A DNA stretch of 64,000 nucleotides from contig JAMWBK010000007.1 of assembly GCA_029953675.1 (NCBI GenBank), forward strand, positions 62,001 through 126,000. The letters run 5' to 3'. The DNA is from Rhodosorus marinus CCMP1338. Taxonomy: Eukaryota; Plantae; Rhodophyta. Numbering within the stretch: position 1 is the first letter of the stretch; each line of letters starts with the position of its first letter. Shown piece after piece: positions 17,073 to 47,588 of the stretch. A model generated the notes under the pieces. That model ran no database searches. It worked only from the letters and a program-made list of their open reading frames with translations, and had not been told where the DNA came from. The position numbers and the translations under genes were made by a program.

Positions 17073-17127
17073 CGAACAGCATCCGCATGCTTCTGATCAT
17101 CTCAGCTCAGTTCAACGCCAGACCAAC

Positions 17128-20100
17128 GTAACCGTAAGCTTTACTGGGCAGCTGCCTACTGCAGCGCAACACTACGTCTAATCCTATCTAGGGAGAAACT
17201 TACTGGAACCCCGCTAGCGGGGTCTCATGCTACGTTCAAAAGAAAAAACAGGCACCAGCGGATTCTCCAACTGGTCCACGCGCAAAGCGCCTAGTGCTAT
17301 CTCTGCGTTACCTCGCCATAGTTGCCGGTTTATCTGCGATCTCAGGTCTCTCAGCTCCTCACTCCTCTGCAGTAAGTGTTTGCAGCTGTCGCGGAGGAAC
17401 TCTTGTGCCATTTGCCCCGTACGCCCAAACGTCTCTATCGCTATCGGGATGAACTTGTCATCCGGTTTCTCCATCACCATCGCTTCCTTGTAGTGAGCGA
17501 TTTTCCACTTCTCCGCAGCTCTCGCCGCGTATCCGCTATCATCTTGGCTCCGCCGCAAATATTTTCCCTGTAATGGTGACACCACGGTCACATCCAGCGC
17601 ATACCTTTGTTCGGTCCTCGGATGCCTGGCAACGATATCAGGTCGCAGTCCGTAGTTCTCGAAGTACCCCTCAGGTTCTTGCTCTACGTCCATGAAGTTC
17701 CATCGCCTCAGCCACCGTGCCAGCTCTCTGCAGATTTCGTCGTGCCTACGTTGCCACAGTCCAGTTGATGTTGGGCAGTGATGAAACCGTTGTACCCCAG
17801 TCCTTCCGTGTTTACTCCGGCAACTAGTGCACTTCTCGGTGGTCCGCAATCCCGTAATTGGCAGCCCCAGCAGTTGTCGAACGTTTACCTGCATCTCAAC
17901 CGCACTCAATTTTTTCGGTGTCAGCGTTAGTATTTCACGCAGCCAGACTCCCGACCCGGATCCCGCGGCGGACCGTATTCGAGCTCGGTTTTCAGGGGAG
18001 ATTCGTGGGGTTGATGACCAACCTTTGGAATGCACAATGGTGTGCCTCTCGAGAGAGGGTTTGTTGTATTGAACCATTATTCCAAGCTGCAGTCTCGCCC
18101 GGTGCGCTTCGAAGAGATGTTTCTCGCGGTTGTTGCAGGGTAGTCAGTGCCAAGATCCGCGGCGGGGTTTCTGGTCCGAGCCTCCGTTGTATTGCTCGCG
18201 ACGATGCACAGATCTGATCCGCCAGCTGTGCAGTCGACCAGCGTTGCTCCGTCGGCTCGTATGTGTCTGGTGAGCGTTCTGCCGAAACCTCCCGCTCTAG
18301 TTCAGTCAGGTATGGCCATTCATCTTCATTGTTCCGGAAGGTGTTTCTCCATGACAAGTAAAACGCGATGGGTTGGACGCGCTTTCGAGTAGCGAAACCC
18401 AACCCCCCCCCCCAGCGGCAGGGCAGAGCGATTTGGTCCGAGATCAGCTCTGCGTACTCGTCGTCCTCTACAGCTGCCGTAGCGAGGCCTCCGAATAGAA
18501 TTTCCAGATGATATCTGGTCATCACATCGGCCTCGCGTGCCAGAGTTCTTCCAAACTCGTATGCGAGGCATCGTAGAACATAATCTAGCCGCGCTTCCGC
18601 ACAGAACCTGAAGAGGGCAATTTGCGTCGTAAGCTCCGGTTGTGGGAGCTTGGCAATTTCCTCAAAGAGTTTCTCATGCTTATTTTGCAGCCCCCGGCAC
18701 TCCTGTTCGATATATTCTCGGCTGCCTATCGGTATCGAGTGGATGGTGACTCCGTCTCTGGTCACTTGGACTCCAGGAATCTCATGATTGACCACTCGCG
18801 TGGTAGTCAGTGTTCGCCCGTACACAGTGCACTTGCCGAGTTGCAGGCGTGCTCAAAGAGAGGGGAGCACAGTTTTTGCCCATGCCAGGGGTGCCTTCAA
18901 GGCTTGTAGCGGCCCGACAATCGTGATATCGTCGTGGATAGCAACAATCGTTTCGTTGGGGAACTTGGCTCGCAACGCTCTTAGAAAGGGCGCAACGCTC
19001 TTGGAAAGGGCGCCAGGGATAGTCCGTGCAGCACCGGCCCCAGTGGATCTCCCTGTTGGACTCCTGTAGCTCCTTGGAGGTCAGACGAGAGGTGTCGGTT
19101 TCGCTCTGTCCAGGGGCAGATCGCCAGCCACAGAGCGTCGGTGAGTCCGCGTTGTCGCTTCCATAGCCAAGTCTATACACTGGTGCAAGCTCCGGGAAGT
19201 GCTCGTCCACCAGTTTCTTGGCAAGGCGTCGGTCGATGCGATTAAAGGCATTCTTCAGGTCTAGCCGAAGGACCACCGAATCGGGTTCACATGACAAATG
19301 GGCCTGGATCGCGTGAAGTGAGCGTTCGCACCCGCCACTTACTCCAATACCCAGTTGTAAGGGCACCAGGAGCTCACGCACCCTGTCCATAACCGCGTGA
19401 AGAGTCCATGGCGTTGCTACCTTGCGCAAAACTTCTGGTACTCCGATAGGGCGAACTCCGGGATGTTCCGGCGGCACTGAACCCTTGTAAGGCTTCGCGA
19501 ACGGCAGGAGTCGACTGCTGCGAAGGGCGCGGGTCAGAGCCGTGGAAAATTTCTCTGGAGCGGTCGCCAGTTGTCGCAATACACGAATCAACGCCACTGC
19601 CTCTGTTGAGTTTCACCTTGGAGGTGTTCCGCTCCGAGACCGCTAGGGCCTGAGCTCTTGCCTTGAGGAAGACGTGCCACGATCGACATGAGGCCCTCGT
19701 CGGCCGCTTTTCTTGAATCCCACCGCCGCTTAAGTGTTTCGGTATTCAGAGCGAGCAAAGATTCCAGGGCTTGTGCAATCTCGTCTGGTAAGTCACCTCC
19801 CGCCGGGTCGGGAAAGAGCGCTTGAGGTTGTCTCCACGTAGCCGCGGTAAAAGGTGCCATATCGGTGGCCTGTAGGCTCCGAGCTGCATCTGAAAGGCGG
19901 CCAAGGTGTGCTAGTTTCAACGCTCGCTTGTGGCGCCCGAGATGTTGGCATCGAACCGCTTTAGCTCCTTGTGGTGCGGTAGTATGCGACAGCATAGACG
20001 CCTTGTCCTCTACAGCGCTCCAGACCGTAGAGAATTCTCCTTCAAGCACGTGCGATACCTGAATGCCAACATCAAGTGCAGAGTGTCCAAGGACAAGGCC

Positions 20101-21490
20101 TGGAAGTCCGACAAGAAGCAGGCTGGCGTTTGTTGGTGCGGTGCTCTCCATAGAGAGCTCTAATGCAGCACGGAAGAGGCAGCTCCATGTATGGACCTGG
20201 CCGCGTGGCACAAATCGCCGTGTGGGAACCGGGCAGAGTGTAAGGCGCGTCCACTGCCTGCCTCCTTCCGTGATGTCGTCGACGAAGACGCTCCACCGTC
20301 TGATCCAGTCTTGACGATCCGAGAAGAACAGAGGCTCGTCGCGGCGTCGTTTGATTCCCCTACGTCTGCTCGGCATTATTGCGCTGGGTTTTCCTGGCTC
20401 TCCTCGTGTCCATCGTGTGATGGTTGCCGTCAAGGGCAACCTGTGTCACAGTGGTATCCTGTGGAGTCTCCTCGGATGCCGGAGTCATCTCAGTATCCGG
20501 TGCGGTGCCATCGGCGGATACTCGCGAGCGCTTCTGTTGAGGTGGCTCCGGAAGGTTGCAGAGGAGCTCCGCATGGGGATTGTCCTCGTGTGCTGCGTGC
20601 TCAGGTACTTGGGAAGTCGCGCTGGTCTCAACCGGGGCGTCAACTGTCCCACGTTCTGCCTGTACATCCCCTGGAAGGGACGAGGCTTCAGGGTCTGCGT
20701 TCGAAGCGGCTGCAGGCCCCGGGGGTTCCGCGCACTCCCCGGGTACCTCAGGCGGATGTTGTCTGGCTTTTAGGAGCTCTAGTCGTCCCTCCAGATACTC
20801 GTAGAGCGCTGCGAGAGTGTGGAAGGAGAGTTGTCGCCTGCGGATCCTCGAACGAATGCGGAGAAGCTGCTCGATGGCCCGCTTCAGCGTGTGGGCAGCG
20901 ATATCCCCGGGAGCGATGGTCTGACGTTCGAGGTAACCCAGAAGGTTGTCTGGGTCCAGCACCTGGCCAGTGTAAAGGCTTACTTGTCGATCGTCGTGTC
21001 GTTGTGTGAAGGATCCGAAAATCCCAGTCCGGAAAACTCCTCGGGAGACGGCACTTTGGAGAATCGGAATTGCGTCTGGATGGCACAGCAGGCTTGCATG
21101 GGAGGCAATAAAGTCCACATGCGCCACATAAGAGCTGGGCATACCCATTGCTCTGCAAAGAACCGTTGTGAAGTCCGCAGGGGCCACCTCATCCAGCCTT
21201 GGGGGTCGGACATTCCGTAACGTCGCGAGGACTGGAGCAACATCGGGTCCCCAGCCAGACCCCCCGACCGTAGCGTGCAAATGCCGCAGGGCAGCCTGCT
21301 GGGTCTGGGGTCCGGGGAGTCCAGAAGTTCTGGAACGAGCATCTCCTCCTCTCCCTGGTTCTTTCTGAGCTGCAAACTCGGCGAAGGTTGGCTTTGTAGG
21401 GCCCTCCCCGATGGCTGGGAATGCCTCCGCATAGTGTCCTAGATCCCGGACACCTGTCCCTCCCTGGGGCGCAGGGGGCCGGGTTCCTAA
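17128..21490 (-). mobile_element. Family C non-LTR retrotransposon copy C1, near full length (ORF1 + RT-RLE), frameshifted
   Basis: ORF1 at 20360-21280 (LRNVRPP). ORF2 has VRPIGVPE, LRLDLKNAFNRIDR, TGVQQGDPLGP, AIHDD, ALPCRWGGGLG, CTSC..HHC, RRHDEI, RPDIV, LDVTVVSP and FIPIAIETFG. 3' end is CAGTAAAGCTTACGGTTAC. Confidence 0.92.
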
Positions 21491-22796
21491 ATCATGGACG
21501 TCATAACTTCCTGGCAGTCAACCGTTACGTAACCACACTCTGATCCAGCTCCGGCTCCAGCTGGGGACCGAATTCTGGCCCGGTCTTCAGCCAAATTTGC
21601 CCGTGGGATACCAGTTTTTGGAAAGCTGCATGGTGTGCCTCTCTGGAGAGGGTTTGTTGAATGGAACCATGTTTCCACGCTGGGGGATCGGCTTCTTCTG
21701 CGCCTGGGGCGGTTTCGGTTTTCTGCCCCAGGGTGGCCAGGTTCTTGATACGCTCGGGGGCATCTGGGCGCAGTCTGCGTTGCGTTGCTTGTGCAGAAGC
21801 GCGGATTTGGTCAGGAAGCTGGGCCGGTGACCTTTGAATTATCCTCTGTTTGTGGGTGTCTGCATGCACTTCCGAAGATGATTGCTCTTGTACCTCGGTG
21901 AGGTATGGCCATTCCCCGTGACTACCTTTGAAAGCTTAACACCAAGCCGAGTAGAAGGCAATGGGCTGGATCCGTTGTCTCGTAGCGAATCCCAGTCCTC
22001 CCCATCGACAGGGGAGTGGGATCTGGTCTAGTGTAGGGTTTTCGTAGTCAGGGCCCTCTATGGCCGTAAGTGTGAGGCCTCCAAATAGCGTATCTAGGTG
22101 ATAGCGCGTCAGGGCGTCCGCCTCCCGTGCAAGTGTTCTTCCAAAGGGGTAGGCGAGGCAGCGTAGAAAGTAGTCCACGCGGGGCTCAGAACAATACCGG
22201 AAGAGGGCCAGTTTCGTAGTCAGTTCCTCAGGGAACAGGTGAACTATCTCCTTAAATGGTTTCTCGTGGTTGTTTTGTAGCCGGCGGCACTCGCTTTGGA
22301 TGTAAGCGCGTGTTCCCATCGGAATGGAATGGATGGTAACTCCGTCTCGCGTCGCCGTGACTCAAGGCATGTCGCGGCTGAGCAGTCGGGGCGTGGTCAA
22401 CGTGATGCCGTAGAAGGTGCACTTGGCAAGCTGCAGTCGGGCTCCGAGTGAGGGAAGTGGAGTCTGACCCCAGTGTATTGAATCTTTCAGTAGTTGTAGC
22501 GGCCCTACGATGGTGATTTCATCGTGAATCGCCACCATGGCCAAAACAGGGGCTTTGTTGTGCAATGCTTCCAAGAAGAGCACCAGGGAGAGCGCATGTA
22601 GGATCGCTCCCAGGTCATCTCCTTGTTGAACTCCCGTTGTGGCCAGAAGCGTCAAGCGATGGGTGTCGTCTTGGTCTGGAACGTGGTTATCACGCAATCT
22701 GAAGAGTGTAGGAGCATCCGTGCTGTCATTTCCGTAGCCAAGCCGGTACACTGCTTCCAGCTCGGGGAAATGGTGGTCCAGTATTAACTCCAGCAT
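21490..22796 (-). mobile_element. Diverged, internally deleted family C fragment C3
   Basis: Encodes TTGVQQGDDLGAILHAL, VAIHDEITIVGP, LPCRWGGLGFAT and GSIQQTLSREAHH, homologous to C1 but clearly diverged. Confidence 0.85.
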
Positions 22797-22977
22797 AGAG
22801 CTGACGCAACTTTTCGTTCAGAGATCTCGTAAAGAACAAGACAGTGGACGTGCACCATCGTTCGACAAAAGAGATGGTAGCAGATTTTCTGACGAAACCC
22901 GCTACGAGAGGAATCCATCATTATGCGGCACCAAATGTCAAGTGGGAGATGCTGAAATTAATGGTTTGGGGGGGTTA

Positions 22978-25439
22978 GATTCGTGTATTGCGACAACTGG
23001 CGACCGCTCCGGAGAAATTTTCCCCGGCTCTGACCACGCCCTTCGCAGCAGTCGACTCCTGCCGTTCGCGAAGCCCAACAAGGGTTCAGTGCCGCCGGAA
23101 CATCCCGGAGTTCGCCCTATCGGAGTACCAGAAGTTTTGCGCAAGGTAGCAACGCCATGGACTCTTCACGCGGTTATGGACAGGGTGCGTGAGCTCCTGG
23201 TGCCCTTACAACTGGGTATTGGAGTAAGTGGCGGGTGCGAACGCTCACTTCACGCGATCCAGGCCCATTTGTCATGTGAACCCGATTCGGTGGTCCTTCG
23301 GCTAGACCTGAAGAATGCCTTTAATCGCATCGACCGACGCCTTGCCAAGAAACTGGTGGACGAGCACTTCCCGGAGCTTGCACCAGTGTATAGACTTGGC
23401 TATGGAAGCGACAACGCGGACTCACCGACGCTCTGTGGCTGGCGATCTGCCCCTGGACAGAGCGAAACCGACACCTCTCGTCTGACCTCCAAGGAGCTAC
23501 AGGAGTCCAACAGGGAGATCCACTGGGGCCGGTGCTGCACGGACTATCCCTGGCGCCCTTTCCAAGAGCGTTGCGCCCTTTCTAAGAGCGTTGCGAGCCA
23601 AGTTCCCCAACGAAACGATTGTTGCTATCCACGACGATATCACGATTGTCGGGCCGCTACAAGCCTTGAAGGCACCCCTGGCATGGGCAAAAACTGTGCT
23701 CCCCTCTCTTTGAGCACGCCTGCAACTCGGCAAGTGCACTGTGTACGGGCGAACACTGACTACCACGCGAGTGGTCAATCATGAGATTCCTGGAGTCCAA
23801 GTGACCAGAGACGGAGTCACCATCCACTCGATACCGATAGGCAGCCGAGAATATATCGAACAGGAGTGCCGGGGGCTGCAAAATAAGCATGAGAAACTCT
23901 TTGAGGAAATTGCCAAGCTCCCACAACCGGAGCTTACGACGCAAATTGCCCTCTTCAGGTTCTGTGCGGAAGCGCGGCTAGATTATGTTCTACGATGCCT
24001 CGCATACGAGTTTGGAAGAACTCTGGCACGCGAGGCCGATGTGATGACCAGATATCATCTGGAAATTCTATTCGGAGGCCTCGCTACGGCAGCTGTAGAG
24101 GACGACGAGTACGCAGAGCTGATCTCGGACCAAATCGCTCTGCCCTGCCGCTGGGGGGGGGGGTTGGGTTTCGCTACTCGAAAGCGCGTCCAACCCATCG
24201 CGTTTTACTTGTCATGGAGAAACACCTTCCGGAACAATGAAGATGAATGGCCATACCTGACTGAACTAGAGCGGGAGGTTTCGGCAGAACGCTCACCAGA
24301 CACATACGAGCCGACGGAGCAACGCTGGTCGACTGCACAGCTGGCGGATCAGATCTGTGCATCGTCGCGAGCAATACAACGGAGGCTCGGACCAGAAACC
24401 CCGCCGCGGATCTTGGCACTGACTACCCTGCAACAACCGCGAGAAACATCTCTTCGAAGCGCACCGGGCGAGACTGCAGCTTGGAATAATGGTTCAATAC
24501 AACAAACCCTCTCTCGAGAGGCACACCATTGTGCATTCCAAAGGTTGGTCATCAACCCCACGAATCTCCCCTGAAAACCGAGCTCGAATACGGTCCGCCG
24601 CGGGATCCGGGTCGGGAGTCTGGCTGCGTGAAATACTAACGCTGACACCGAAAAAATTGAGTGCGGTTGAGATGCAGGTAAACGTTCGACAACTGCTGGG
24701 GCTGCCAATTACGGGATTGCGGACCACCGAGAAGTGCACTAGTTGCCGGAGTAAACACGGAAGGACTGGGGTACAACGGTTTCATCACTGCCCAACATCA
24801 ACTGGACTGTGGCAACGTAGGCACGACGAAATCTGCAGAGAGCTGGCACGGTGGCTGAGGCGATGGAACTTCATGGACGTAGAGCAAGAACCTGAGGGGT
24901 ACTTCGAGAACTACGGACTGCGACCTGATATCGTTGCCAGGCATCCGAGGACCGAACAAAGGTATGCGCTGGATGTGACCGTGGTGTCACCATTACAGGG
25001 AAAATATTTGCGGCGGAGCCAAGATGATAGCGGATACGCGGCGAGAGCTGCGGAGAAGTGGAAAATCGCTCACTACAAGGAAGCGATGGTGATGGAGAAA
25101 CCGGATGACAAGTTCATCCCGATAGCGATAGAGACGTTTGGGCGTACGGGGCAAATGGCACAAGAGTTCCTCCGCGACAGCTGCAAACACTTACTGCAGA
25201 GGAGTGAGGAGCTGAGAGACCTGAGATCGCAGATAAACCGGCAACTATGGCGAGGTAACGCAGAGATAGCACTAGGCGCTTTGCGCGTTGGACCAGTTGG
25301 AGAATCCGCTGGTGCCTGTTTTTTCTTTTGAACGTAGCATGAGACCCCGCTAGCGGGGTTCCAGTAAGTTTCTCCCTAGATAGGATTAGACGTAGTGTTG
25401 CGCTGCAGTAGGCAGCTGCCCAGTAAAGCTTACGGTTAC
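22978..25439 (+). mobile_element. Family C copy C2, 5'-truncated, near-identical inverted twin of the C1 3' half
   Basis: ORF translations 23741..24574 and 17992..18825 are identical. It shares the same 3' terminus as C1. Confidence 0.92.
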
Positions 25440-31172: not shown

Positions 31173-34100
31173 GTCTTCCTCCTCCGCGTGCGTGTCGTCC
31201 CGGTTACCCCTGTTTACCAGTGACCGCTCAGCCTGGCATGAGCGTGTTCTCTCGTGGTTATCTCACCTTGTCGCCTCCTACCCGGACGGTTCCCTTCCCC
31301 TTTGTCGTCAGAGCACGGCCGTACGGCTCCCTCGTCGACTTCATAAGCCCCTAGGATTGGTGTTGGATTTTCTCTGGCAGCAGGTCGCCGCGAACCCTCA
31401 CTGCTCTCTTCGCTGGGAACTCTTGTTCTTTTTTCCCCGCCTCGTGCTCACCTCCTCTACCGTCCCCCTCAACCCACATCCTCGCCGGGTCCACCCTCGC
31501 CGAAAACTGCAAATGTTCCTTTCCGGCGACTTTGAGGACCTCGAACGTCTTTATTTCGCTTCTCTCTCTTCCTTTTCTCCTAGTGCTCCCTCAGCTTTTA
31601 GGTCTTCTCGACAGAATCGGGCGCGTCACGCGGTGGCAGGCGGTGATCTGCGGCGGGCAGCCGGGATCCTCCAGCAGCGGCAACCTGTGGTTCCATACTC
31701 CGATGATCTTTCTTCACCGCTCCGTTTGCTCTTTCCCTCGGAAGGCTCCCCTTGGGACTCCTCGTTTGAATCAGTGTTGGAAGAGTACCGCGCCGCGCCA
31801 CATCCCAGTGCGCGGTTAGTGGTCAATCTGGAGGCGGTGCGTGAGTTGGTTCATGATGCTCCGAAGGGCCGTTCCCCAGGGCCCTCGGGGCTGCGGGTGG
31901 AATATCTCCGTTTCTTAAGTGATGAAGGTTTGAAGGCGTTGGCGTGGGTGGTCGAAGCGCTTGTGAATGGTGATCCCCTGTGTGAGTGTGCGTGGTTCTT
32001 GGTCGGGCGTTCGCAGTTGTGTCTGCTTTCGAAGCCCAGCCACACGGCCTCGAGCCCTGCTATTCGCCCTATTGGCCTGGTTGAGGTGGTCCGCAAATTG
32101 GCGGCGCGATGGTTAGTGAAAATCCTGGTTCCCGAATCCCGCCGTTTCTTTGGGCACGTGCAGTTAGGCGTGGGCTATCGTGGTGGCTGTGAGTTGTTGT
32201 CTGTTTTACTCCGTTCGGAAATGGCGTACTCCCCAGATTCTGGGCTCCTCTCTGTAGATTTTACCAATGCGTTCAACCGCGTCTCTCGTCCGGCTCTCAT
32301 GCACGTGGTGCGCGAAGTCTTCCCTGTAGGCTTTCCCTTTGTTTGTAGACTTTATTCTCCGCTTGGTCGTGGGGCTACCTATGACACCCTTGGCGCTTCC
32401 TCACACACGTTTGCGGCGCGCACAGGGGTACAACAGGGTGATCCCTTGTCCCCTTTCCTACATGCCTGTGGACTACAACTCGTCTTGCTTTGTCTTCGCT
32501 CCGAATTCCCGCAGGTTCGTACGGTTGCATACCACGACGACGTGTGCCTCCTGTGCCCCCTGATACTCTAGCGCTCGCTTATGATCGTCTCCGCTCCTTG
32601 GCTTCGCGTTGACCTGGAGGTTAATCATCACAAATCGTTCTACTGGGGAGGTGTAGCTGCACAAGAGCAGCAGGTACCTGCGTCGTTCCAGGATATTTGG
32701 AGACCGGATGGTTTTGTCCACTTAGGCATCCCCTACGGGTCGCCGTCCTTCGTTGAAGGCGAGTTGCTGCAGCTCCTCGGTAAGCACAGACAGCTGGTTG
32801 CAGAGCTTCGACGGCTACCTCCGGGCTTTCTCCAGTGCTCGTTGTTGCTGTTTCGGTATTGTTGCAGTCAGCGGTTAACCTATTGGCTTCGCTCACTTCC
32901 AACTCATTGGGGCCGGTGGTTGGCCACTCGTGCGGATGCTGAAAGTTTCTGTGACCTGGGGTATTTTCTCGATGAAGAGCTGAGCGCTCTGCCGCGACCC
33001 ACCTGTGATGTTGTGCGCGCCCTGGTAGGCCTCCCATTGCGATTGGGGGGACTGGGCCTCTGCAATCGTGTTGTGGTCCAACCTGCAGCCGCAGTAGGGG
33101 CCTGGGGAACCGCACTTCCCACTTTGAGCAGCTTGGGTATCTCGAAGTTCCGCAATTTGATGGCGAGCCTCTCGCGGGGTGTCTTGCTTCCCAGCGTACC
33201 GGAAAGCGCCCAAGACTTGTTTCTGGAGCTCCAAACCGCCCTGAATTCCTGTACTAGTCTCCCCGAAACCGTTCAACCCCGTCTTCCTGACTGGCGAGCT
33301 GTATTTGACCGCTCTCGAGGCTCCGCCCCGGGGATTCGTCCTGCGCCTGAACCTGTTCTAGGGGAGATTGACCCAGTGGTTGCCGCAGAAGAAGAAGTTC
33401 CAGTTGATCCTCCTGATGATCCCCAGCGCGCTGGGAGCCGAGCTCAAGCACGCACGGATGCGCTGCAAAATATCCTTTCTTGGGACTTGCACCGTGCTGC
33501 ATATGGCCGACTCCTCGCGCAGATGGTCTCATCTTCTCGCGCTCGCGCCCGCCTACGTAGTCTTGGAGGGGTTCTTAGCTCTCAGTGGCTCATGACCGTA
33601 CCAGCCTTTCCGCCACTCACACTGTCGGATTTCGAAGTGCGTACTTCACTGCGCTTATACCTCGGCTTACATCAGCCCCCTTGGCCGTACGAGATGGGTT
33701 CGTCGTGCCCTCTCTGCTCTCAGACTGAAGACAACGCAGATTTTGGCGCCCACCTGCTCGCTAGTTGCCCGGCGGTGAAAGGTGCTCGAACCCGCCGCCA
33801 CACACGGATCTTGAACCTGTTATACCGGGAACTTCGGCCTATAGTCCGGCAAGCCGGTCTGGAAATCGAACGTGAGAAACCTTTACCCGTCGCGGACTTT
33901 CAAAATGATGAACGCCGTGTAGCCGACCTGGTGATCACCTGTGACGACAGCCGCCGTACCACATACGTTGATCTTGCTGTTCCTAACCCTCAAGCTAGTC
34001 GTTATCTCCCGGCTGCGGGGGAGCGCCGTGGATCTGCCGCCGCCAGCATGAGACGCCGCAAAGAGATCAAATACGCGGGGGCTTTGTCTTCCCCTGGTGT

Positions 34101-34305
34101 TCGTGCTTCGGCACTAGCACATCGCTTGGTACCCCTGATCATTGAGTGCTTTGGGTTCATGGACTCTGTTGGTTCTCGCTGGCTTCGGGAGTTGTTCCGC
34201 GAACGCCCTGACCGTCTTCAATCGTTGTTTACCCGCTTAAGTTTCCTGCTGTGGCGCATGAATGCCGCTTTGATGTTGGAGGCGCGAGTACTTCGCCGCG
34301 CTTAG
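31165..34305 (+). CDS. Family B ORF2: reverse transcriptase + CCHC knuckle + restriction-like endonuclease (one short frameshifted patch)
   Basis: ATG at 31165 (MSESSS). Motifs include IRPIGLVE, VDFTNAFNRVSR, TGVQQGDPLSP, AYHDD, LPLRLGGLG, CPLC..H..C, RTRRH, VADLVI, YVDLAVPNP and LIIECFG. The in-frame TAG at 32569-32571 lies in a compensated frameshift patch. Confidence 0.9.
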
Positions 34306-34488: not shown

Positions 34489-37400
34489 GACTGGACTGGA
34501 CTTTGCTAGCAAACTGGACTTTACTAGCATAGCCTGAAGCGCTACGCAAGGCGTGAAGATGAACTAATAACTAGGGAGGGAAGCATGCAACCCCAGGCGC
34601 CGATGGCGCGCCTCGGAAAGCATGTCGCTGGAATATCGCCAAAGGGAGACACTTAAACGCCTCAAGAGCGCCAAATATGCAGTAGGATGCTCAGCAAAAC
34701 ATTTCCGCAACCACTCTAAACCCGACTTATCGACGTGACCAAAGCTTTCCACAATGAATGGCTGGAACCGGTGAGAGCGACCCTCAGCGCAAGGCAGACT
34801 GGCCATGCTCTCAGCATACCGTCGTTCCTTAACTCTTCGAAGGGCTGAAGCCGCGGCCCCCCAGCGGCGGGCGGCTGCGGTGAGGTGGGCGCTGGCCACG
34901 GGGCAGGTAATCGCAAGGTCCACATATGTTGAGCGTCTGGCAGCAGCGTCGGAGACGAGGAGATCGGCGATACAACGGGGCGGTGCAGAGTCCGAGATGG
35001 ATCTGGGCAGTTCCGACTCAACCTCAACCGTATGCCCTATCCGAGTCAAAAATTCGCTGAGGATGTACTTGAGGCGAGTGTGACGCCTCGTACGGAGACC
35101 TCGCAACAGTCCGCAGGAACCCAGGAAGTGGTAGCCACAAGCGTCAATCCGGCTCTCACATCCCTGACAAAAAGACGGCCGATTAGAGTGCCACGGAGCC
35201 TGTGGCAAACCGAGATAGATCCGTGCGGCAGAACGGAACTGGAAAGCATCGAGACGATGACTCAATGACGACGGTAGAGTGGTTAACCACAAGTGCGAGG
35301 TGGCCTCCCATGCCGCGGAGACGAGCGGCAGTGGTAGGCGGCGTGAGAGGAGAATTGAGCATGACTGTGTGAGCGGCACTGTGTTGGCCCCAGGTGAGGC
35401 TATGTTGAATCACATCAGTGCGGGAGCTCCACAATCGGCTCAAACCCGGGTAGTCTGCAACAGGGGACCCGGGGCTAGCCTCTCCGTCATCGGCAAGAAC
35501 TCGGTCGAGGGGACAATCCTCAATCGCTTCAGCTCGTCCCCATAACAGCTCCCTCCAGGAACGAAAGCGGGACCGATTTGCGTCCGGCACGGCGTTGCAC
35601 CTCCTGAACGCGTGTTGAAGACCATCATAAATTGTCAAAAGCGGGGGCGGCAGGGTCACTGGATCCTCGTTGGTCAAAGCTCGAGCCAAGAGGCAGGCAC
35701 TTCGCATCTGGAAGGTCACCAACGCTCGCAGCGCGGTAGCCCAGCAGGCAACCGCCGCTGGCGAGCATACAAGCCCACGGTCTGCGACGCCGAATCCCCC
35801 TAATCGCAACGGTAGAGCGATCTGTGCACGAATTAAGTCCCTGTCGGGAGCAGCTTCAAGATCGAGGGGCTCATCCAAGAGCGTTCCCCAGTGTTGCAGG
35901 GTCATTTCGTCGGCTTTAGCCGCGATCCACGAGCCCCACGCTGGAGGCAGGCTGCGCAACCAGTAGTTGAGTCTGGGACCGGCACAAAAGCGGGAAAGCA
36001 AGCAGGCCGATTGCAGCATGCTGTCGGGTAGGTGCTCAATGGCGTCGGTGAGTTGCTTGTGCCGTGCCAAAACTCGCTCGCAGGATGCTTGGACAAAGTT
36101 GTCAGTCCCCAATCCGACGCCGTGGTGTTCGAACCCTTCACGTTCGCTGATTAGTCGCAGAGTGGGTGGCAGAGAGTTCAGCGACACGTCCCTCGGGGAG
36201 AGAAAGCGACATTTTTCTGTTTCCACAGTCAAACCGACGCGACGTGCAATCGCTTCGATCGCGGTCAGTCCCCTAGCCAGGGTGTCAGGGGTGCCCAGCA
36301 ATGTTACGTCATCGTGGTACGCGCAGATTCGAAGATCCGAGACCTCAGTCGAAAGACGTAAAAGTACGAGCTGTAGGGCACAGGCATGAAGAAGAGGTCC
36401 GCAAGGGTCGCCTTGTTGGACGCCAGTATGTGCTTGAAAAACAGTGCCCTCCGTTGTCAAGTAGGGGAGGCTCTCCCCTCCGTAAATACCCGATAGAAAC
36501 GGCCACGCCTCCGGAAACACACGTCGGAGCACCTCTAGCGCATGCGTCCGCGACACGCTGTTGAATGCGTTCCGGAAATCAACCACCAAGACTCCCCACT
36601 CCGGCCTACTGGCGCGTTCTAGCTCGATCCCATGGGTGATCAGTTCACAACCCCCAGAGAATCCCACCCCGACTTGCAAGGGCGCCATAAAAGCTGTGAC
36701 GCGCTGGCGAAGGCGCTGGCATAGCCACCTCCCGGCTAACTTCCGTAGGCTCTCCACCATCCCGATCGGCCGGAGACGCGGGTGGGCCGGCTGGTGGTCA
36801 GGTTTCGTGAGCAAGCAAAGCTGTGCCTGCCGGAGATGTTCCCATGGCGCACCCGATACGCCCTGGAACAACTTGTTAAGGATCCTCAGAAGCGCGCTCT
36901 TGCCAGGCTGGCTCAGGGCCTGCAATAGCTCTGTTCTTAGTCCGGAGGGTCCGGGACAGCGTCCCCGACGCGAGGTACGAAGCAAATCCTCCAGGTCAGA
37001 CTCACTGAGCGTCAGATCGATGCGAAACCTGGCCAACTCCGGACGGTCCAAGAATACCTCGAATTCAGGGGACAAATCCACGTCGGACTCAGGGAACAAA
37101 GACGACACCGTCTGGGCGAGACTATCATCGTAGGGGAGGACAGGCGCCTGGCCCTCCAAAACCCGCGCCGCTCGACTTAAATCGCCCACTGCTACCAATT
37201 TCTGTACTCGAGCCGGCACGGGCGACACTGTGCCATGCCGAGTCCGACGGGCGGATGGTGCTGACGACGCCAAATAGCTGCGCTGTAGTACTTCGAAGTC
37301 TCCCTTCAAGAACAGGGCCAGTCGGTCTCGTACTCGCCATCTGCGCTCCGATGTGTGAATGGGGGCCAGAATCAGGCGCGGCATGACCCCCAGAAAAACC

Positions 37401-37692
37401 CAAATGACTGTGTCCCGAATGTTGCGAGCCAGGCTCGTGAAGATGAAATCGAGAATGGTTCCAGCTACTAGAAGGTCTCCACGAGGAAGGACGACTGGGG
37501 GAATGCCCCCACGGAGGGGAAGCGAGCCTCCTTCCAAAGAAATCCACCGCCGGAGCCAACTCCGAAAACGCGTACGCCAAATGCCCCAGTCTCCGCCCTC
37601 CTTCAGGACATAAGACTGTAGATCCATAGGCTGCGACCTCGCAGCCGTGCCTGGAGCGCTAGTCGTGCTTCTCCCCCTTAGACCCGGGTCAC
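34489..37692 (-). mobile_element. Family A copy A3, 5'-truncated in ORF1; ORF2 intact except for one frameshift
   Basis: ORF2 runs from MDLQSY (37627) through the complete RT (TGVQQGDPCGP, AYHDD). A 2-nt loss at about 35300 shifts it to the 34564..35379 frame with the knuckle and RLE. Confidence 0.93.
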
Positions 37693-38235
37693 CGTCTGGA
37701 TGCCTTCCAGTTTCGCTCCGCCGCACGGATTTACCTGGGTTTCCCACAAGCTCCTAGGCACTCTAATCGGCCGTCTTTCTGTCAGGGATGTGAGAGTCGG
37801 ATCGATTCTTGTGGTTACCACTTCTTAGGTTCACGCGGACTGTTAAGAGGTCTTTGTACGAGGCGTCACACTCGCTTCAAGTAGATTCTCAGCGAATGTT
37901 TGACTCGGGTAGGGCATACCGTTGAGGTGGAATCGGAACTACAAAGATCGGTCTCGGATAGGGCACCGCCCCGCTGTACCGCAGATCTCCTCGTCTCCGA
38001 TGCTGCCGCCAGACGCTCAGCATATGTTGACCTCGCGATTACATGCCCTGTGGCAAGCGCCCATCTCAAGGCTGATGCCCGCCGCCGGGAGCAGCTGCTT
38101 CGGCTCTTCGCCGCGTGAAGGAACGACGGTATGCTGAGAGTATGGCCACGCTGGGTTTGCACGCTTCCCTATCTAGTTCTTAGTTCCCTTCACGGTTTGC
38201 GTAGCGTTTTAGGCTATGCTAATAAAGCCTAAAGC
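37690..38235 (+). mobile_element. Family A 3' fragment (A5) joined in inverted orientation to the 5' break of A3
   Basis: Encodes HRLDAFQFRSAAR, GHTVEVESEL and YVDLAITCP, and ends CTATGCTAATAAAGCCTAAAGC. Confidence 0.88.
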
Positions 38236-38496: not shown

Positions 38497-40751
38497 TCAC
38501 TGGACCCAACTGGATGCGGTAGCGGCAACGTTTCTGACGATGGATGGGGGATCGCTGTACAGCATCGATCCTAAAGGTTCCGCAATTCCGAGTCTGTATA
38601 GGGTTCGTGGTATGAACAGGAGCAAGTTCCCTAGGATCGGATGGACGGTCTCAGTGAAGGTGGACGCGAGGACGTCGTCTACAACAATAGTCTCTTCCAG
38701 CGTATGCGGATTGTAGAGCCCTTGTCGAGTGACCCGTGTGAGTTTCTTCACCACCACAATCTCTCCGTCACCCAGTCGTACCCGATCTCCCTCAACAACC
38801 AGGCGTGCCGGCTTCACTCCGCCGTCTACAATGAGGTAGTGACTTGGAGATAGCTCAATCGTGGCCTTCCCGACTTCCACCTTGATAAACTCAGTCACGA
38901 TCTCCGCGTCTCTATGACCAAAGGCATAGACATCACTGTATGATCCGTTAGACACCAGTACGCGGTCCCCAGCCTTCAACTCGCTCATCGTCTTGTTGGA
39001 ATTGTCCTCAAGTTCAACCCTAGCGGCGCCTGGGAAGCATGCGGCGACCACGGGAATAGGGGGTGGATTGGAGACGTCTGGTGATTCACTCGGAGACGGT
39101 TCGGGTATTTCTGTGAAGAAGATCGGTTCGGTGGGCGTCGGAGTTCCCTCCGGAGCCGCCGTTGCCGTCTCAGCTGCCTCTGGCGTGCTTGTCGCGGTTT
39201 CTTCTGGGGCGCTTGTCGCCGTCTCCTCCGGCGCGCTCGTCGCCGTCTCTTCTGGTACGCTCGTCACCGTGACTTCTGGTACGCTCGTCACCGTGACTTC
39301 TGGTACGCTCGTCGCCGTCTCTTCTGGTATGCTCGTCGCCGTCTCCTCCGGTACGCTTGTTGCCGTCACCTCTGGTACGCTTGTTGCCGTCACCTCTGGT
39401 ACGCTCGTCGCCGTCTCCACTGGTACGCTCGTCGCCGTCTCCACTGGTACGCTCGTAGCTGTCTCCCCTGGTGCGCTCGTCGCTGTCTCCTCTGGTACCC
39501 TTGTCGCCGTCTCCTCTGGTACCCTTGTCGCCGTCTCCTCTGGTACCCTTGTTGGTGTCCCCTCTGGTACCCTTGTTGGTGTCCCCTCTGCAGGTTCTGT
39601 TGACGTGGAATCTGTCGAAGGAAGCGCGGATGGCGTTGGCAGAGTTGTTGGTGGAGTTGCTGGCGGAGGTGTTGGCGGAGGTGTTGGCGGAGGTGTTGGC
39701 AGAGGTGTTGGCGGAGATGTTGGCGGAGATGTTGGCGGAGGTGTTGGTGGTGCTGGCGACGGCGTTGGTGGGGGCCGCGATGGTGTTGGTGGTGCTGGCG
39801 ATGGTGTCGGTTGAAGCGTATCTGATACCTCGGGAATCAAACTCTGAAGCCAAATTCTATTGGTTTCGTGGTACATGTTCGCGTACACATCCTCTCCACT
39901 TCCATCACATCCTAGTTAGCCAACAACGAGGTACGTAAGCCACAGACTTGTGCGACCGGTGCTCAGCGAATATACTTACCAATGCCTCCAGTAAACTTTC
40001 CAAAGCTTAAGATTCCAATAGCTCGGTCATCTCGGGGCGTCTCTCCCTCCATGATCAGCGGACTGCCGCTGTCCCCATAACAAGTGACGGTGTTCAGCTC
40101 AGTGTTCATCGACGACGAGCAGATCAGCGTGGATGGGTCCTGAACCGGTATGAACCGAGGAAGTTCCCGCAGGAACTGACAGTTTTCCCATGAAATCGAC
40201 TGGGAATCGTAGCGGCGTAGCTTCCCGTCAACCTCCAGATGCTGCAAGCCAGTGTTGTTGTCGACGCCAAAGCCTATGGAGGTGGTTTGACCGCCGTATT
40301 CTGGTTCATCGTAACTGATTCGCAGGGCTGGAACGTCAAAGATCTGCTCGAAGAGTCTGAGAACCGCCAGATCAGATGCTACGTTCTCGTCGCGATTGAA
40401 TCCCGGATGCACGTGGACTGCGTGGACAGGCGAACAGAACCCCGGGTTGACGTTCTTGACCACTGTCCCAGCGCACGCTTGGACCTCATCGAGAGAAGTA
40501 AAATCCGCACAGTGAGCGACGGTCAAGACCGTGTCGGGACCCACGAGAACACCTGAGCATTTTACAAATCCGGATTCTGATATGTAAACCATGTACGGAT
40601 ACCTCGAGGCATCAGTCACCACGTCCCCGTCAATGATTCTCTGAGCCGTTTTGGTCCGCACTCGCTCTACAGGAAGCCCATAAACATGAGTAACAGTTAG
40701 TAAAATATACAGCAAAGCAGCCGCACCGCTGCTCGTCAAATAATGCCTCAT
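38497..40751 (-). CDS. Secreted S1 serine protease + Pro/Thr/Glu mucin-like stalk + Hedgehog-type Hint domain, two exons (40751-39980, 39911-38497), 728 aa
   Basis: Signal peptide MRHYLT..., activation site QR|IIDG, and triad motifs TVAHC, SDLAVLRL, GDSGSP. A 68-nt GTAAGT...CTAG intron joins in frame to GCDGSGEDVYANM. Hint motifs are ACFPG, ELKAGDRV, LSPSHYL and GLYNPHTLEETIVVDDVLAS. Confidence 0.85.
39180..39590 (-). repeat. Coding minisatellite: 17 units of 24 bp (consensus PEETATSV)
   Basis: Counted in the translation from AEGTPTRV to PEETATST; preceded by (CCTCCGCCAACA)-type PTPP repeats. Confidence 0.92.

Positions 40752-40756: not shown

Positions 40757-40785
<29 letters not shown>
40757..40785. 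repeat. (CT)n/(AG)n microsatellite just upstream of the protease start codon
   Basis: Run of TC dinucleotides. Confidence 0.95.
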
Positions 40786-41177: not shown

Positions 41178-41671
41178 TACGTGAGAAACCTTTACCCGTC
41201 GCGGACTTTCAAAATGATGAACGCCGTGTAGCCGACCTGGTGATAACCTGTGACGACAGCCGCCGTACCACATACGTTGATCTTGCTGTTCCCAACCCTC
41301 AAGCTAGTCGTTATCTCCCGGCTGCGGGGGAGCGCCGTGGATCTGCCGCCGCCAGCATGAGACGCCGCAAAGAGATCAAATACGCGGGGGCTTTGTCTTC
41401 CCCTGGTGTTCGTGCTTCGGCACTAGCACATCGCTTGGTACCCCTGATCATTGAGTGCTTTGGGTTCATGGACTCTGTTGGTTCTCGCTGGCTTCGGGAG
41501 TTGTTCCGCGAACGCCCTGACCGTCTTCAATCGTTGTTTACCCGCTTAAGTTTCCTGCTGTGGCGCATGAATGCCGCTTTGATGTTGGAGGCGCGAGTAC
41601 TTCGCCGCGCTTAGTCTTTTTTTCCCCTCGGGGTTTTTTTTTTTTTCAGCCTCCGATTAAACCATTCATTC
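41178..41671 (+). mobile_element. 5'-truncated young family B copy
   Basis: Near-identical to the B 3' end. Flanked by ATATCAGGAGA at 41167-41177 and 41672-41682; tail is CCATTCATTC. Confidence 0.93.
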
Positions 41672-42077: not shown

Positions 42078-43080
42078 AGTGTAATAGACGCAGTGGTTGC
42101 CGCAGAAGAAGAAGTTCCAGTTGATCCTCCTGATGATTCCCAGCGCGCTGGGAGCCGAGCTCAAGCACGCACGGATGCGCTGCAAAATATCCTTTCTTGG
42201 GACTTGCACCGTGCTGCATATGGCCGACTCCTCGCGCAGATGGTCTCATCTTCTCGCGCTCGCGCCCGCCTACGTAGTCTTGGAGGGGTTCTTAGCTCTC
42301 AGTGGCTCATGACCGTACCAGCCTTTCCGCCACTCACACTGTCGGATTTCGAAGTGCGTACTTCACTGCGCTTATACCTCGGCTTACATCAGCCCCCTTG
42401 GCCGTACGAGATGGGTTCGTCGTGCCCTCTCTGCTCTCAGACTGAAGACAACGCAGATTTTGGCGCCCACCTGCTCGCTAGTTGCCCGGCGGTGAAAGGT
42501 GCTCGAACCCGCCGCCACACACGGATCTTGAACCTGTTATACCGGGAACTTCGGCCTATAGTCCGGCAAGCCGGTCTGGAAATCGAACGTGAGAAACCTT
42601 TACCCGTCGCGGACTTTCAAAATGATGAACGCCGTGTAGCCGACCTGGTGATCACCTGTGACGACAGCCGCCGTACCACATACGTTGATCTTGCTGTTCC
42701 TAACCCTCAAGCTAGTCGTTATCTCCCGGCTGCGGGGGAGCGCCGTGGATCTGCCGCCGCCAGCATGAGACGCCGCAAAGAGATCAAATACGCGGGGGCT
42801 TTGTCTTCCCCTGGTGTTCGTGCTTCGGCACTAGCACATCGCTTGGTACCCCTGATCATTGAGTGCTTTGGGTTCATGGACTCTGTTGGTTCTCGCTGGC
42901 TTCGGGAGTTGTTCCGCGAACGCCCTGACCGTCTTCAATCGTTGTTTACCCGCTTAAGTTTCCTGCTGTGGCGCATGAATGCCGCTTTGATGTTGGAGGC
43001 GCGAGTACTTCGCCGCGCTTAGTTTTTTTTCCCCTCGGGGTTTTTTTTTTCAGCCTCCGATTAAACCATTCATTCATTCA
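42078..43080 (+). mobile_element. 5'-truncated young family B copy
   Basis: Near-identical to about 33375-34360. Flanked by TATGTAATAGGCAC at 42064-42077 and 43081-43094; tail is CCATTCATTCATTCA. Confidence 0.93.
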
Positions 43081-44290: not shown

Positions 44291-45526
44291 AAGTGGCTTG
44301 AATTTATTTGTCTGCATGGATTTACGAAAAACGATACTTGTTCCAATGATGTATTCTGTTCACTGAAATCAGTCAATATAAACCTCCAATAAATTTGGAT
44401 ATGCTGCTGATACTCGTCAAAAACAATTGTTTTCGATCTCAATATTCCCTTTTTGCCCAGTAGTCCAATCATATCGTTTAAAATACTACGTCTTTGAATA
44501 TGGCTCTTTAATTTTCAATGCTGGCCGGTAAAGTTAAAAGTTTTATGAATAGATCCCTTGCTGACACTTGAGATCCCGGGCGATGGGCGCTCAGTTTCTC
44601 AAAGGGATTGCGCCGAGCAGAACTGTTGATGGAAGGGGAAGGGTTGAGTGCAGCGCAAGCAGCTGTTAGTGATGAGGGTTTGTCCGGTCTAAAATAAGGG
44701 TAGTAGCTGGTTATGTTTTCCTGACTCAGGTATTACCGTGCCTGACGCGCTGAAAGCTGTTGACAGTGTGTGCTTGTGATTTTTATTGGGTACCAGGCTA
44801 GGAGCCAACTTGGCGGAAACTTGGATGATGTTGGAAGACTGAGCCTCATTCTAAGAGTCGCCCCTGAATTTTCTTCAACCCTGATTAAGCATGCTGGTGA
44901 TTTTAAACTGCGTCTATTGATTTGCTAGAAGACATGACGGCAACGTAAACTTGACAAGCAGATGTGCAATGGGATAGCCCAATCAATGAGAGTCTACGAC
45001 TTCGGCAAGCAAGGAAAAAGGCCTCCTGGCTGTTGAGCTGCGGCTTTTTCCGTCTCCCGTTACTTGCAGTAAAAATCTTTGACGTAGATGTGAAGTCCGA
45101 GTTAATCAATTTTTCTATTATCTGCAGCCGGCGTTGCAGCCCTACCTCCGTGCCGTCTTCTCAGGATTATTGCAGACGTTTTTGAAAGGACGTGCTTGTA
45201 CGAGGTCCTGAGTATCTATTGTCATTGAATTAGGACATCCGAACCCTAAAAATTCGGGCTAAGCTTTCCTGCACAGCAGTTTGGAAATTCATCGCGAAAA
45301 GGCTCAACTCCGTCAAGTATTGGGCAAGAGTGTGGACTCAGTCGGAGGCGTCATACCACAGTCTCGTTCTGTCTATCCCAAGGTCACTTGTTCTCGCTGC
45401 ACTTCCGCCCCGCAAGAGAACACTGAGTGATACTATAAAACCCAGCGCGTCCTGGTTCCTGTTGTGCACAGATTGTCAACTCAACGTAGACACCATATGC
45501 AGAACATACAGTACATGAGCACAGAG

Positions 45527-47588
45527 ATGGGGAGAACGATTGGAGTTGTCTTAGCGTTGATACTACTTGTGACCTCGGGCAGGGGTGCTATTCTTAGAGA
45601 TTCATCTAAGCGGTGGCCCGTTGGAACGCCCATTGCGTTCGCCTTCGAAGGGTTTGTGGCACCCGGAGTTCGAGACGCAGTAACCAGGGCTTTGGAGGAG
45701 TACAGTGCAAAGACCTGTCTGGAATTCAAGCCTGCGGTGCGGGGCGTGGACCGTACTACAATAAGTTTTTCTTCGGATCACCTTGACCGATGTTACCAAA
45801 GCACTAGCGGGTTCCTTGGTGATGGGCACGATCATCCTATCTACATCCATCCCGACTGCCCCGGGGGGATAGACCTCTTCACCCAAGCTCTTCACGAGAC
45901 CGGTCGTGCACTGGGCCTTATCGACTTGCAAAGACGTCCAGACAGAGGACAGTTCTTGTCCGTAAAGAGAAGCAGAGTGCGAAACAACCCAGCAGAAAGG
46001 GAGATGTTTGAGAGGATGGAGTGGGAGGAGGTCAGCCTAGAAGGCGTCGAAGACTTCACATTGAGTTCTGTAATGCTTTACGGTGAATTCTTCCTCTCCC
46101 AGAATGGAGGGAGGACCATGTTCCCTAGGAAACCCGGCGCCACATTGAAATCCAGGAAATTCAAGCTCGGAAGGGGAGATATCACCGTCCTCAACAGAGC
46201 TTACAATTGTCCCGGACCGGCTACTCCCGGGAGGCTCACCCTCGACCTCGTGAAGAAAACCAATCTGCATCCTCCAGAGGTCATCGAGGTCATCGCCGAG
46301 GCCGTGGACACAGATGGATTGAGTACAGTTCAAACTTTGTTACTGTTCAACACTGGAAGCAGGGACATTGTAGACGCCTCCCTTGACTTTGGCAACGGCA
46401 GCTTCCAGTACGTCCGGATACAAGCGCGCAATGCCGCGGGGATCCAGACAGAAAAAATTCTTCTTTCGATGCTGGTTCCAGTTGTGGAAGGAAGAACGAA
46501 TAAGAAACTATGCGAGGAACCGAAGAAGTGTGCTAAAAACATCCGATTTCGTTTGAACCATGTGGAACCCTCTTCGACGGCAGTTTGTAACCAGAACGCC
46601 TGCGAGAATGATGGGATTTGTGACGCAACCGGAGGGGATTCAGTCATCTGCATCTGCAAGAGGGGCTTCGCCGGCAACAGATGCCAGCACCGGTATGGAG
46701 AGCTCAATGTCGTCGTTCTCAGAGGACAGAACCTTTTCAACCGAGATTCTGGAGCAGATGGGCTGAGCGACCCGTTCGTCAACTTCACCGCGCGGAATGC
46801 TGCAGGCAAGACCCCAACCAAACCGAGCCTTGTCAAAGTTAATACTCTAAATCCCGACTGGAAGCAGCAGCGTCTCAATTTCGGAAGTAGTACTTGGGTC
46901 GAACTCGACGCTCAAGTGTTGGACTTTTCTTCTTGGAAACGCCGCGGAACCGCTAACCCCAATCCGAACAAAGGACCTCCACGCGCCGAGCTTTGCCCTA
47001 CGTGCATCTGCCACAGCTCTGAGGGTACCGGTTTCCGATCGGCAGACCAAGTCGAGCTCCTTCCTCGTCTGTGGGGCGGGTTTTGATCCTCAATGCAGTG
47101 TAAGAGCTCATCTCAGAACTGAGTTCCGCCCGCTCAATGCACCGGTGAACTGCCCAATCGGACGAACGGGAGCCTTTTGTGAACTAGTCTTTGCATCTCT
47201 CGAGATCAAGGTGGTCCGAATGGTCAGACCCGGCGTCTCAATCTCTGCAAGTCGAATCGAGATCTCTACTGAGAACGAGAGCTGCGTTAAAAAGGTTGAA
47301 CGCACAAGCGCAAAATCAGGCTTTGGAGAGGTGAATTGGAACGAATCCGTCTCGTTTGGAAACGATGCGTTCAAATCGGTTGTCTTGAAGGAAATCTCAT
47401 CCCCGGCATTTCCCCGAGTCGGCTTGATTTTGCTACCAACATCGTCAGGATCAGCACCCATCAAACGCAGGGTCTGTCGGAACACGGTTCCCTGTGACGA
47501 GTTCATAGACCTGGAGGTAACCAATCAGTTAGCACCCGCGCCGGGGATCCATGACATCACAAATACAGAATTTTTGTGTCCAAGTTGA
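45527..47588 (+). CDS. Secreted astacin-like (M12A fold, Zn ligands lost) + EGF + C2 + EGF-like + C2-like protein; one +1 frameshift near 46930
   Basis: Signal peptide MGRTIGVVLALILLV, astacin-like RWP..I.F and KTCLEF, HETGRALGLIDLQRRPDR, SSVMLYG Met-turn, EGF CNQNAC..C..C.C..GFAGNRC, and C2 LSDPFV..NTLNPDW. The frame after TTTTCTTCTT stays open to the stop at 47588. Confidence 0.75.

Follow-up and report, generated by a model that had tools for sequence, protein, structure and literature searches.

The covalent linking of cholesterol to a protein by a Hint domain and its sterol-recognition region (SRR) is generally regarded as a speciality of animal Hedgehog ligands. Hog domains, which combine Hint with such a tail, have been known outside animals since 2008. 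Red algal Hog proteins were reported in that year without a protease partner, the words "protease" and "trypsin" being absent from the survey, and in Hog expressed sequence tags (ESTs) of red alga and moss the Cys of motif J was found replaced by Ser, Thr or Asp (PMC2362128). Cyanidiales red algae harbor genes composed of kelch, a Thr/Pro/Ala linker and Hint (K+H genes; PMC9812998), and these are the nearest published parallel to a design of cargo domain, stalk and Hint. Here we describe a gene of the red alga Rhodosorus marinus CCMP1338 that codes for an S1 serine protease joined through a repetitive stalk to a Hog domain of Hedgehog type. It lies on the minus strand, at positions 38497-40751 of the 64,000-nt stretch analysed (hereafter the window; contig JAMWBK010000007.1 of assembly GCA_029953675.1, positions 62,001 to 126,000). 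No protease-Hog fusion is described in the literature searched, which left out subscription journals. The architecture is neither hidden nor unique, and the gene is a member of a protease-Hog family of stylonematophycean red algae that is undescribed in the literature and visible in databases.

An earlier note on this DNA had proposed that two open reading frames (ORFs) are joined in frame by a 68-nt intron, which would restore the expected C-terminus of the S1 domain. Both proposals proved correct. When every 68-nt deletion was tried, 21 left the frame open, and only the one at 39979-39912 (GTAAGTAT...AACTAG) has GT-AG ends. The spliced frame starts with ATG at 40751, continues in exon 2 from 39911 and reaches TGA at 38499-38497, which gives 728 codons and a stop. 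Splicing supplies Cys220, the last strand and the C-terminal helix of the protease. In one annotated paralogue of the same genome (KAJ8900696.1), the only intron is of phase 1 and, as in our gene, splits the codon just ahead of Cys220. In another one (KAJ8902199.1), the single phase-1 intron lies 4 codons upstream of Cys220, 3 codons off the position in our gene. Homologues derived from transcripts of the MMETSP collection cross the junction without any indel and keep the Cys together with the following E-x-V-Y. An orthologue from a related strain or species is present in short Logan contigs. Its proteins are 84-90% identical to ours and its exon DNA about 86%; its intron measures 72 nt, is about 65% identical with indels, and retains GT and AG. 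The exons are thus conserved and the intron is not. Compared with the orthologous contig L003, the ratio of nonsynonymous to synonymous substitution rates (dN/dS) is 0.22 for the protease exon, at dS of 0.40, and 0.12 for the Hog domain (range of dS 0.40-0.53). Both parts are under purifying selection.

The gene cannot be called hidden, as it was in the earlier note, because the same model is already deposited. The public annotation of the assembly has a minus-strand gene over exactly this range, with a 728-residue product that has no Pfam match on record. The annotated product was matched by coordinates and length. Since no second canonical 68-nt intron leaves the frame open, we take it to be the same protein. 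We regard the gene model and the domain architecture as secure.

The N-terminal portion appears to be a secreted S1 protease precursor. The putative signal peptide holds the only strongly hydrophobic 19-residue windows of the protein, and the propeptide behind it ends with Arg38. The sequence R38|IIDG aligns with the IVGG N-terminus of active trypsin, so that Ile39 corresponds to Ile16, and Asp194 is present as well. Arg or Lys occupies the putative P1 position of activation in 10 of 13 aligned family sequences, including the window protein and its orthologue P0002. We infer that the protease is made as a zymogen and secreted. The Pfam profile Trypsin (PF00089) matches residues 39-257 with 74.7 bits (cut-off 20.6), and trypsins in the PDB match the domain at E of about 3e-11. 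Alignment to bovine trypsin finds H57, D102, S195, I16 and D194 all in place; the catalytic triad is intact, as had been claimed. Eight Cys are placed for four pairs, and the pair Cys191-Cys220 spans the intron. The AlphaFold model of the spliced protease (pLDDT 82, pTM 0.85) was compared with known structures by Foldseek, and about 255 columns were aligned to enteropeptidase, prostasin and Fusarium trypsin with a target TM-score of 0.75-0.82; prostasin structures are among its best fold matches. The full two-barrel fold, including Cys191-Cys220 and the C-terminal helix, is reached only with the spliced model.

Substrate specificity of the protease is less clear. Its pocket consists of Val189, Gly216 and Asp226 together with Glu225, and differs from the trypsin-type set of Asp189, Gly216 and Gly226. 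Of the 11 trypsin-bearing relatives, 9 retain Glu225 (10 of 12 when the window protein is counted). From Val at position 189 it had been deduced that the specificity is probably not trypsin-like. The alignment to bovine trypsin bears out the residue itself. The deduction is unsafe because of Asp226, Glu225, the putative Arg|Ile activation site and the existence of a precedent: an acidic residue at 226 can give basic-P1 specificity where 189 is non-acidic, for example in fiddler-crab collagenase. The S1 specificity cannot be read off the pocket residues.

Between protease and Hog domain stands a stalk of 263 aa, and its description as mucin-like holds. It is rich in Pro (26%), Thr (22%), Glu (13%), Ser (10%) and Ala (10%) and contains no Cys. 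A block rich in PT and PS is followed by 16 eight-residue units with consensus PEETATS[VA], which are flanked by degenerate copies. Such a stalk is probably O-glycosylated and would serve as a rigid spacer. In the orthologous contig L002, only about 3 acidic 8-aa units separate the PT block from Hint, compared with at least 16 in the window stalk. Either the stalk length varies largely from strain to strain, or short-read assembly has collapsed the repeats.

The C-terminal portion is a Hog domain. Pfam Hint (PF01079) matches residues 547-695 with 76.2 bits (cut-off 29.7), and intein-type Hint profiles were not significant in the Pfam scan of the product. The domain starts at A548|C549 (CFPG; Cys codon 39039-39037), exactly where the earlier note had placed it. 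Phmmer finds the autoprocessing C-terminal domain of Drosophila Hedgehog (Hh-C) with E=2e-7 and 28-29% identity, and the alignment to 6td6_B extends to residue 438, which is into the SRR. AlphaFold models the last 200 residues with pLDDT of 91 as a Hint beta-core followed by two helices, a helix-loop-helix. The proposed resemblance of the tail to the SRR is therefore supported by alignment and model. Top Foldseek hits of the Hog model are the Drosophila Hh autoprocessing domain structures 6tyy and 1at0 (target TM-score 0.83-0.84, root-mean-square deviation 2.2 Å), and inteins come next. The closest PDB entry in both sequence and fold is an engineered mutant, D46H. An intein was considered and rejected, since the protein ends after residue 728 with a stop, has no C-extein, and its best profile and fold matches are Hedgehog-type Hint. 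A transmembrane anchor in the tail was rejected too: its helix scores 1.26, and strongly hydrophobic windows occur only in the signal peptide. The product has no Pfam match to the Hedge signalling domain; its N-terminal domain is Trypsin, so it is not Hedgehog proper.

Conservation in the Hog domain was counted in an alignment of the window sequence with 89 relatives (n=90). The nucleophile Cys549 is invariant among the 88 sequences that reach this site, and so is the following Phe (88/88). The S/T-x-x-H motif (T69 and H72 in Drosophila) reads Ser612-Pro-Ser-His615; its His is found in 90/90, its first residue is Ser in 45 and Thr in 45. His590 stands at the position of the Drosophila general base Asp46 (D303), and His occurs there in 86/90. 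The tail motif LLxxPRxxYRLGxxEPLGS is conserved across the family. One difference was seen within the orthologue. At Hint residue 7, contig L001 (SRR32518360) has TAA and contig L002 (SRR32518362) has GAA (GAATV*LEDG and GAATVELEDG, respectively). The difference may stem from a sequencing error, or else a nonsense allele of the orthologue may be segregating.

Relatives of the gene are numerous. With the Hog part as query, an exhaustive HMMER search yielded 4,920 representatives (E<=0.001), of which the best 150 were taken further and 149 scanned with Pfam. Word-index searches with the Hog part and the protease part returned one protein each, encoded in either case on a short Logan contig. The best 150 of the 4,920 are 33-52% identical, the orthologue with its 90% excepted, and the match is C-terminal in all of them. 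PF01079 was found in 149/149 scanned. Trypsin is also present in 11/149, more often than any other recognisable partner; pentapeptide repeats (4), Spondin_N (4), fasciclin (3) and pectinacetylesterase (2) come next, and most of these 149 have Cys-rich N-terminal regions only. The protease partner, new to the earlier note, recurs in at least 11 representative clusters. Among them are two annotated paralogues from this genome as well as entries that UniProt lists as "Peptidase S1 domain-containing protein", a name that the Rhodosorus relatives bear. Trypsin-Hog proteins of R. marinus make up three of the four closest non-orthologous Hog relatives and the sixth; of these four, two are encoded in the same genome and two are known as MMETSP transcripts. 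Several of the trypsin-Hog architectures come from single transcripts. In the records, R. marinus is the sole organism named for trypsin-Hog proteins, and Bangiopsis is named for Hog proteins without a trypsin domain.

The closest architectural counterparts are KAJ8900696.1 (P0004), KAJ8902199.1 (P0005), A0A7S2ZZT1 (P0152), A0A7S2ZS30 (P0007) and the MMETSP/JGI transcripts P0009, P0022, P0029, P0039 and P0057. With the window protein they share the order of signal peptide, S1 protease and Hog, and P0004 and P0005 also the place of the intron. Further common features are an additional Cys pair in the protease domain, Glu225, a residue 189 that is not acidic, His at the general-base position and the same tail motif. 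Hog identity to the window protein is 41-52% in these relatives and 38-52% across all trypsin-bearing representatives. Most of them possess a Cys-rich module between protease and Hog and a short stalk or none, whereas the window protein has its 263-aa repeat stalk and no such module. Two sequences deviate. P0119, with its canonical trypsin pocket and without the extra Cys pair of the family, may represent a second, independent fusion. The MMETSP/JGI transcript P0018 carries Leu at His57 and Val at Ser195, which makes it a pseudo-protease, and Lys at the Hog general-base position.

We suggest, as a fairly probable reading, that the gene product is a secreted precursor composed of a zymogen S1 protease of chymotrypsin fold, a stalk and a self-processing Hog domain. 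The signal peptide and the short propeptide would be removed, the latter after Arg38, and Ile39 (equivalent to Ile16) would be exposed. By homology with Hedgehog, Cys549 would attack the carbonyl of Ala548 (N-to-S acyl shift), resulting in a thioester. The thioester would then be resolved by a nucleophile that the tail positions and His590 activates, and the protease with its stalk would leave the Hog domain. Should a 3-beta-hydroxysterol act as the nucleophile, as in Hedgehog, the stalk of the protease would end in a lipid, and the enzyme would be held at the cell surface. Secretion, zymogen activation, glycosylation and self-cleavage are predictions here, and the identity of the adduct is the most tentative of them. 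Self-cleavage at Ala548|Cys549 via a thioester is probable for this copy by analogy with Hedgehog; we do not rate it higher because of Glu664. Taken together, what the earlier note observed is confirmed, and its interpretation is partly supported.

Several findings weigh against the proposed reading. The near-invariant core Gly of the motif (E)G(T/D)IVV (Gly in 88/90) is Glu664 in the window protein (HTLEGTIVV is the motif with Gly in place), and no other trypsin-Hint relative named above has Glu there. Its codon is GAG (38694-38692) compared with GGG in the 90%-identical orthologue, and Drosophila Hh has Gly too. Glu664 occupies a tight turn within the Hint core; processing of this copy could be slowed or abolished by it. 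Asn686 stands in place of a His that is retained in 56/90 and that in hSHH (His374) contacts cholesterol in simulations (PMC7906309). Cys143 of Drosophila is replaced by Thr675, as in 71/90 of the family. Neither transcript nor protein data were found for the gene, and a DNA pattern of the spliced junction, with orthologue differences allowed, had 0 matches in JGI contigs. Finally, neither sterol transfer nor a sterol adduct was found for any non-animal Hog protein in the literature searched.

We rate a sterol adduct as rather doubtful because no non-animal case has been demonstrated and because the SHH-type cholesterol-contacting His is missing. Rhodosorus sp. makes 3-beta-hydroxysterols, chiefly 24-methylcholesta-5,22E-dienol (PMC12256458). 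It is conceivable, if unlikely, that the Hog tail esterifies such an algal sterol, mainly 24-methylcholesta-5,22-dienol, to the C-terminus of the stalk and so creates a sterol-anchored surface protease. With His at the general-base position, the engineered Drosophila variant D303H (D46H) keeps cholesterolysis and has widened sterol tolerance (PMC9163320).

Plain hydrolytic release is the main rival. In this reading the Hog domain does no more than detach itself, water serving as the nucleophile; a soluble, lipid-free secreted protease with its stalk is left, and Hog is a removable folding, sorting or quality-control module of the secretory pathway. Hydrolysis is a known side reaction of Hh-C (PMC9163320). 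The substituted positions, Asn for His and Thr for Cys143, are relevant to sterol handling or catalysis in animal Hh, and the missing precedent for a non-animal sterol adduct fits as well. However, strong purifying selection on a conserved 52-aa tail is hard to explain if nothing is recognised. The tail is also homologous to the Hedgehog SRR, is predicted to form helix-loop-helix, and the general-base His is kept. We consider release by water alone an unlikely outcome and favor a recognised nucleophile, because the tail is conserved and selected and the general base is retained.

A further alternative concerns only this copy. The substitution Gly664Glu may have ended processing of its Hog domain, so that the protein stays a single chain. 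Its amphipathic tail may then do no more than adhere to the membrane, and the copy may be moving away from the family function. The rarity of Glu at this position argues for it, as do the loss of His57 and Ser195 in P0018, by which loss of function is seen to occur in the family, and the placement of the gene among recently active retroelement copies. On the other hand, all residues known as catalytic are intact and Hog dN/dS is low. Glu664 could be tolerated in the turn or be due to an error of assembly, and AlphaFold confidence is high at the site, though insensitive to point changes. Loss of processing seems improbable to us. The last alternative, that splicing does not occur and the ORFs are two independent genes or parts of a pseudogene, we reject as next to impossible: although no transcript was found for the locus and the intron is still present in contig L003, which seems to be genomic DNA, the protease without exon 2 would lose Cys220, the strand 226-230 and the C-terminal helix, neither a start nor a signal peptide is plausible for exon 2 alone, and the intron position and phase, the uninterrupted junctions of transcript-derived homologues and the divergence of the intron between conserved exons all contradict it.

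Features of the gene and its surroundings are listed in Table 1. The gene lies between retroelement copies. Three segments of direct repeats occur around it, and one element with a reverse-transcriptase domain is bounded by inverted arms; its layout resembles that of a DIRS-like retrotransposon. An annotated gene for another secreted protease, an astacin, is situated 4.7 kb from the protease-Hog gene. The actin-related protein encoded farther away is 92% identical to an MMETSP transcript of R. marinus, and for this reason the two sources named R. marinus are quite divergent. A GC-rich region with overlapping ORFs on both strands looks like repeated or mobile DNA.

Table 1. Features of the protease-Hog gene and of neighbouring DNA (positions within the window)
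Feature	Positions	Strand	Description
Whole gene	38497..40751	-	two exons, 728-aa product; annotated gene over same range
(GA)14 microsatellite	40757..40784	-	just upstream of ATG, presumed 5' untranslated region
Exon 1	39980..40751	-	signal peptide, propeptide, S1 from Ile39 to first base of Gly258 codon
Exon 1 motifs	within 39980..40751	-	His57 (TVAHC), Asp102 (DLAVL), Ser195 (GDSGSP), Cys191
Signal peptide	40677..40751	-	aa 1-25
Propeptide	40638..40676	-	aa 26-38
Intron	39912..39979	-	spliceosomal, 68 nt, phase 1, GTAAGT...CTAG, in-frame TGA inside
Start of exon 2 (protease end)	39835..39911	-	Cys220 (partner of Cys191), Glu225 (residue 264 of the product), Asp226 (residue 265), strand VYANM, C-terminal helix NRIWLQSLI
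Stalk	39046..39834	-	aa 284-546, 263 aa; composition and repeats
Tandem repeats in stalk	39626..39811	-	12/21-nt period
Tandem repeats in stalk	39187..39590	-	24-nt period, encodes the eight-residue units
Hint module	38656..39039	-	aa 549-676; Pfam, phmmer, AlphaFold, Foldseek, dN/dS 0.12
Adduct/sterol-recognition-like region (ARR)	38500..38655	-	aa 677-728; predicted helices 682-697, 714-727
Direct repeats	33367..34169, 41179..41478, 42084..42886		three segments, 99-100% identical
Retroelement ORF	35183..37747	-	854-aa ORF, reverse-transcriptase domain
Inverted arms of retroelement	34860..35261, 37688..38089		402 nt, 85% complementary; element 34860..38089
Astacin gene	45497..47086	+	annotated, 529 aa; secreted astacin (M12A) metalloprotease, EGF-like and C2 domains
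Actin-related protein gene	60997..62529	-	511 aa; ARP4/actin-like-6 type, long acidic/Pro-rich insert
Overlapping ORFs	14700..25300	both	270-340 aa, GC-rich (e.g. 17214..21280 minus, 22942..25331 plus)

The protease-Hog family offers a cargo with easily assayed activity and a compact, conserved Hog domain with a natural general-base His. This makes it a tractable system for learning whether sterols are transferred by non-animal Hogs, and why a unicellular alga would fix a protease to its surface. Sterol anchoring, if true, would set a double precedent: no protein sterylation would have been shown before outside animals, and none with an enzyme for cargo. A His that occurs naturally at the general-base position would then be used in the manner of the engineered D46H variant of Hedgehog, and sterol-tethering of secreted proteins would appear older than Hedgehog signalling. 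If the Hog domain only cleaves itself, the gene is a modest addition to Hog architectures.

Comparison with animal Hedgehog (Drosophila Hh-C, 1AT0 and 6TYY) reveals a common scheme. The Cys nucleophile in a CF motif, the S/T-x-x-H motif and the SRR-like helix-loop-helix are shared, and so is a secreted N-terminal cargo that would be freed by cleavage before Cys. The cargo of the window protein, however, is an S1 protease with a stalk and not the Hedge signalling domain. His instead of Asp stands at its general-base position, like in the engineered D46H variant, Thr replaces Cys143, Ala instead of Gly precedes the nucleophilic Cys, and Asn replaces the SRR His.

Prostasin, anchored by glycosylphosphatidylinositol (GPI), is a lipid-anchored S1 protease of animals; the anchor is attached by GPI transamidase. 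The sterol model, if right, would lead to an equivalent result: a protease of trypsin fold at the outer face of the membrane, with a lipid at its C-terminus. The anchoring chemistry differs, GPI transamidase in one case and Hint autoprocessing in the other, so the analogy is functional and homology is limited to the protease fold.

Other Hog proteins share the modular plan of signal peptide, variable cargo and Hog. These are choanoflagellate Hoglet, with a Thr-rich stretch and Hog, nematode Warthog, Groundhog, Quahog and T-hog, and the Hog ESTs of red alga and moss (PMC2362128). Thr-rich stretches ahead of Hog are common to the proteins of that survey and the window protein, and Thr675 matches the replacement of the motif-J Cys in red alga and moss. 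Unlike the window protein, none of the Hog proteins described there has a protease. The Cyanidiales K+H genes, finally, share with our gene a red algal host, an N-terminal domain of extracellular type, a Thr/Pro/Ala-rich linker to Hint and membership in a multicopy family. Their cargo is different, a kelch domain (galactose-oxidase-like), and their copies are subtelomeric duplicates; the two are likened here by description, not by sequence.

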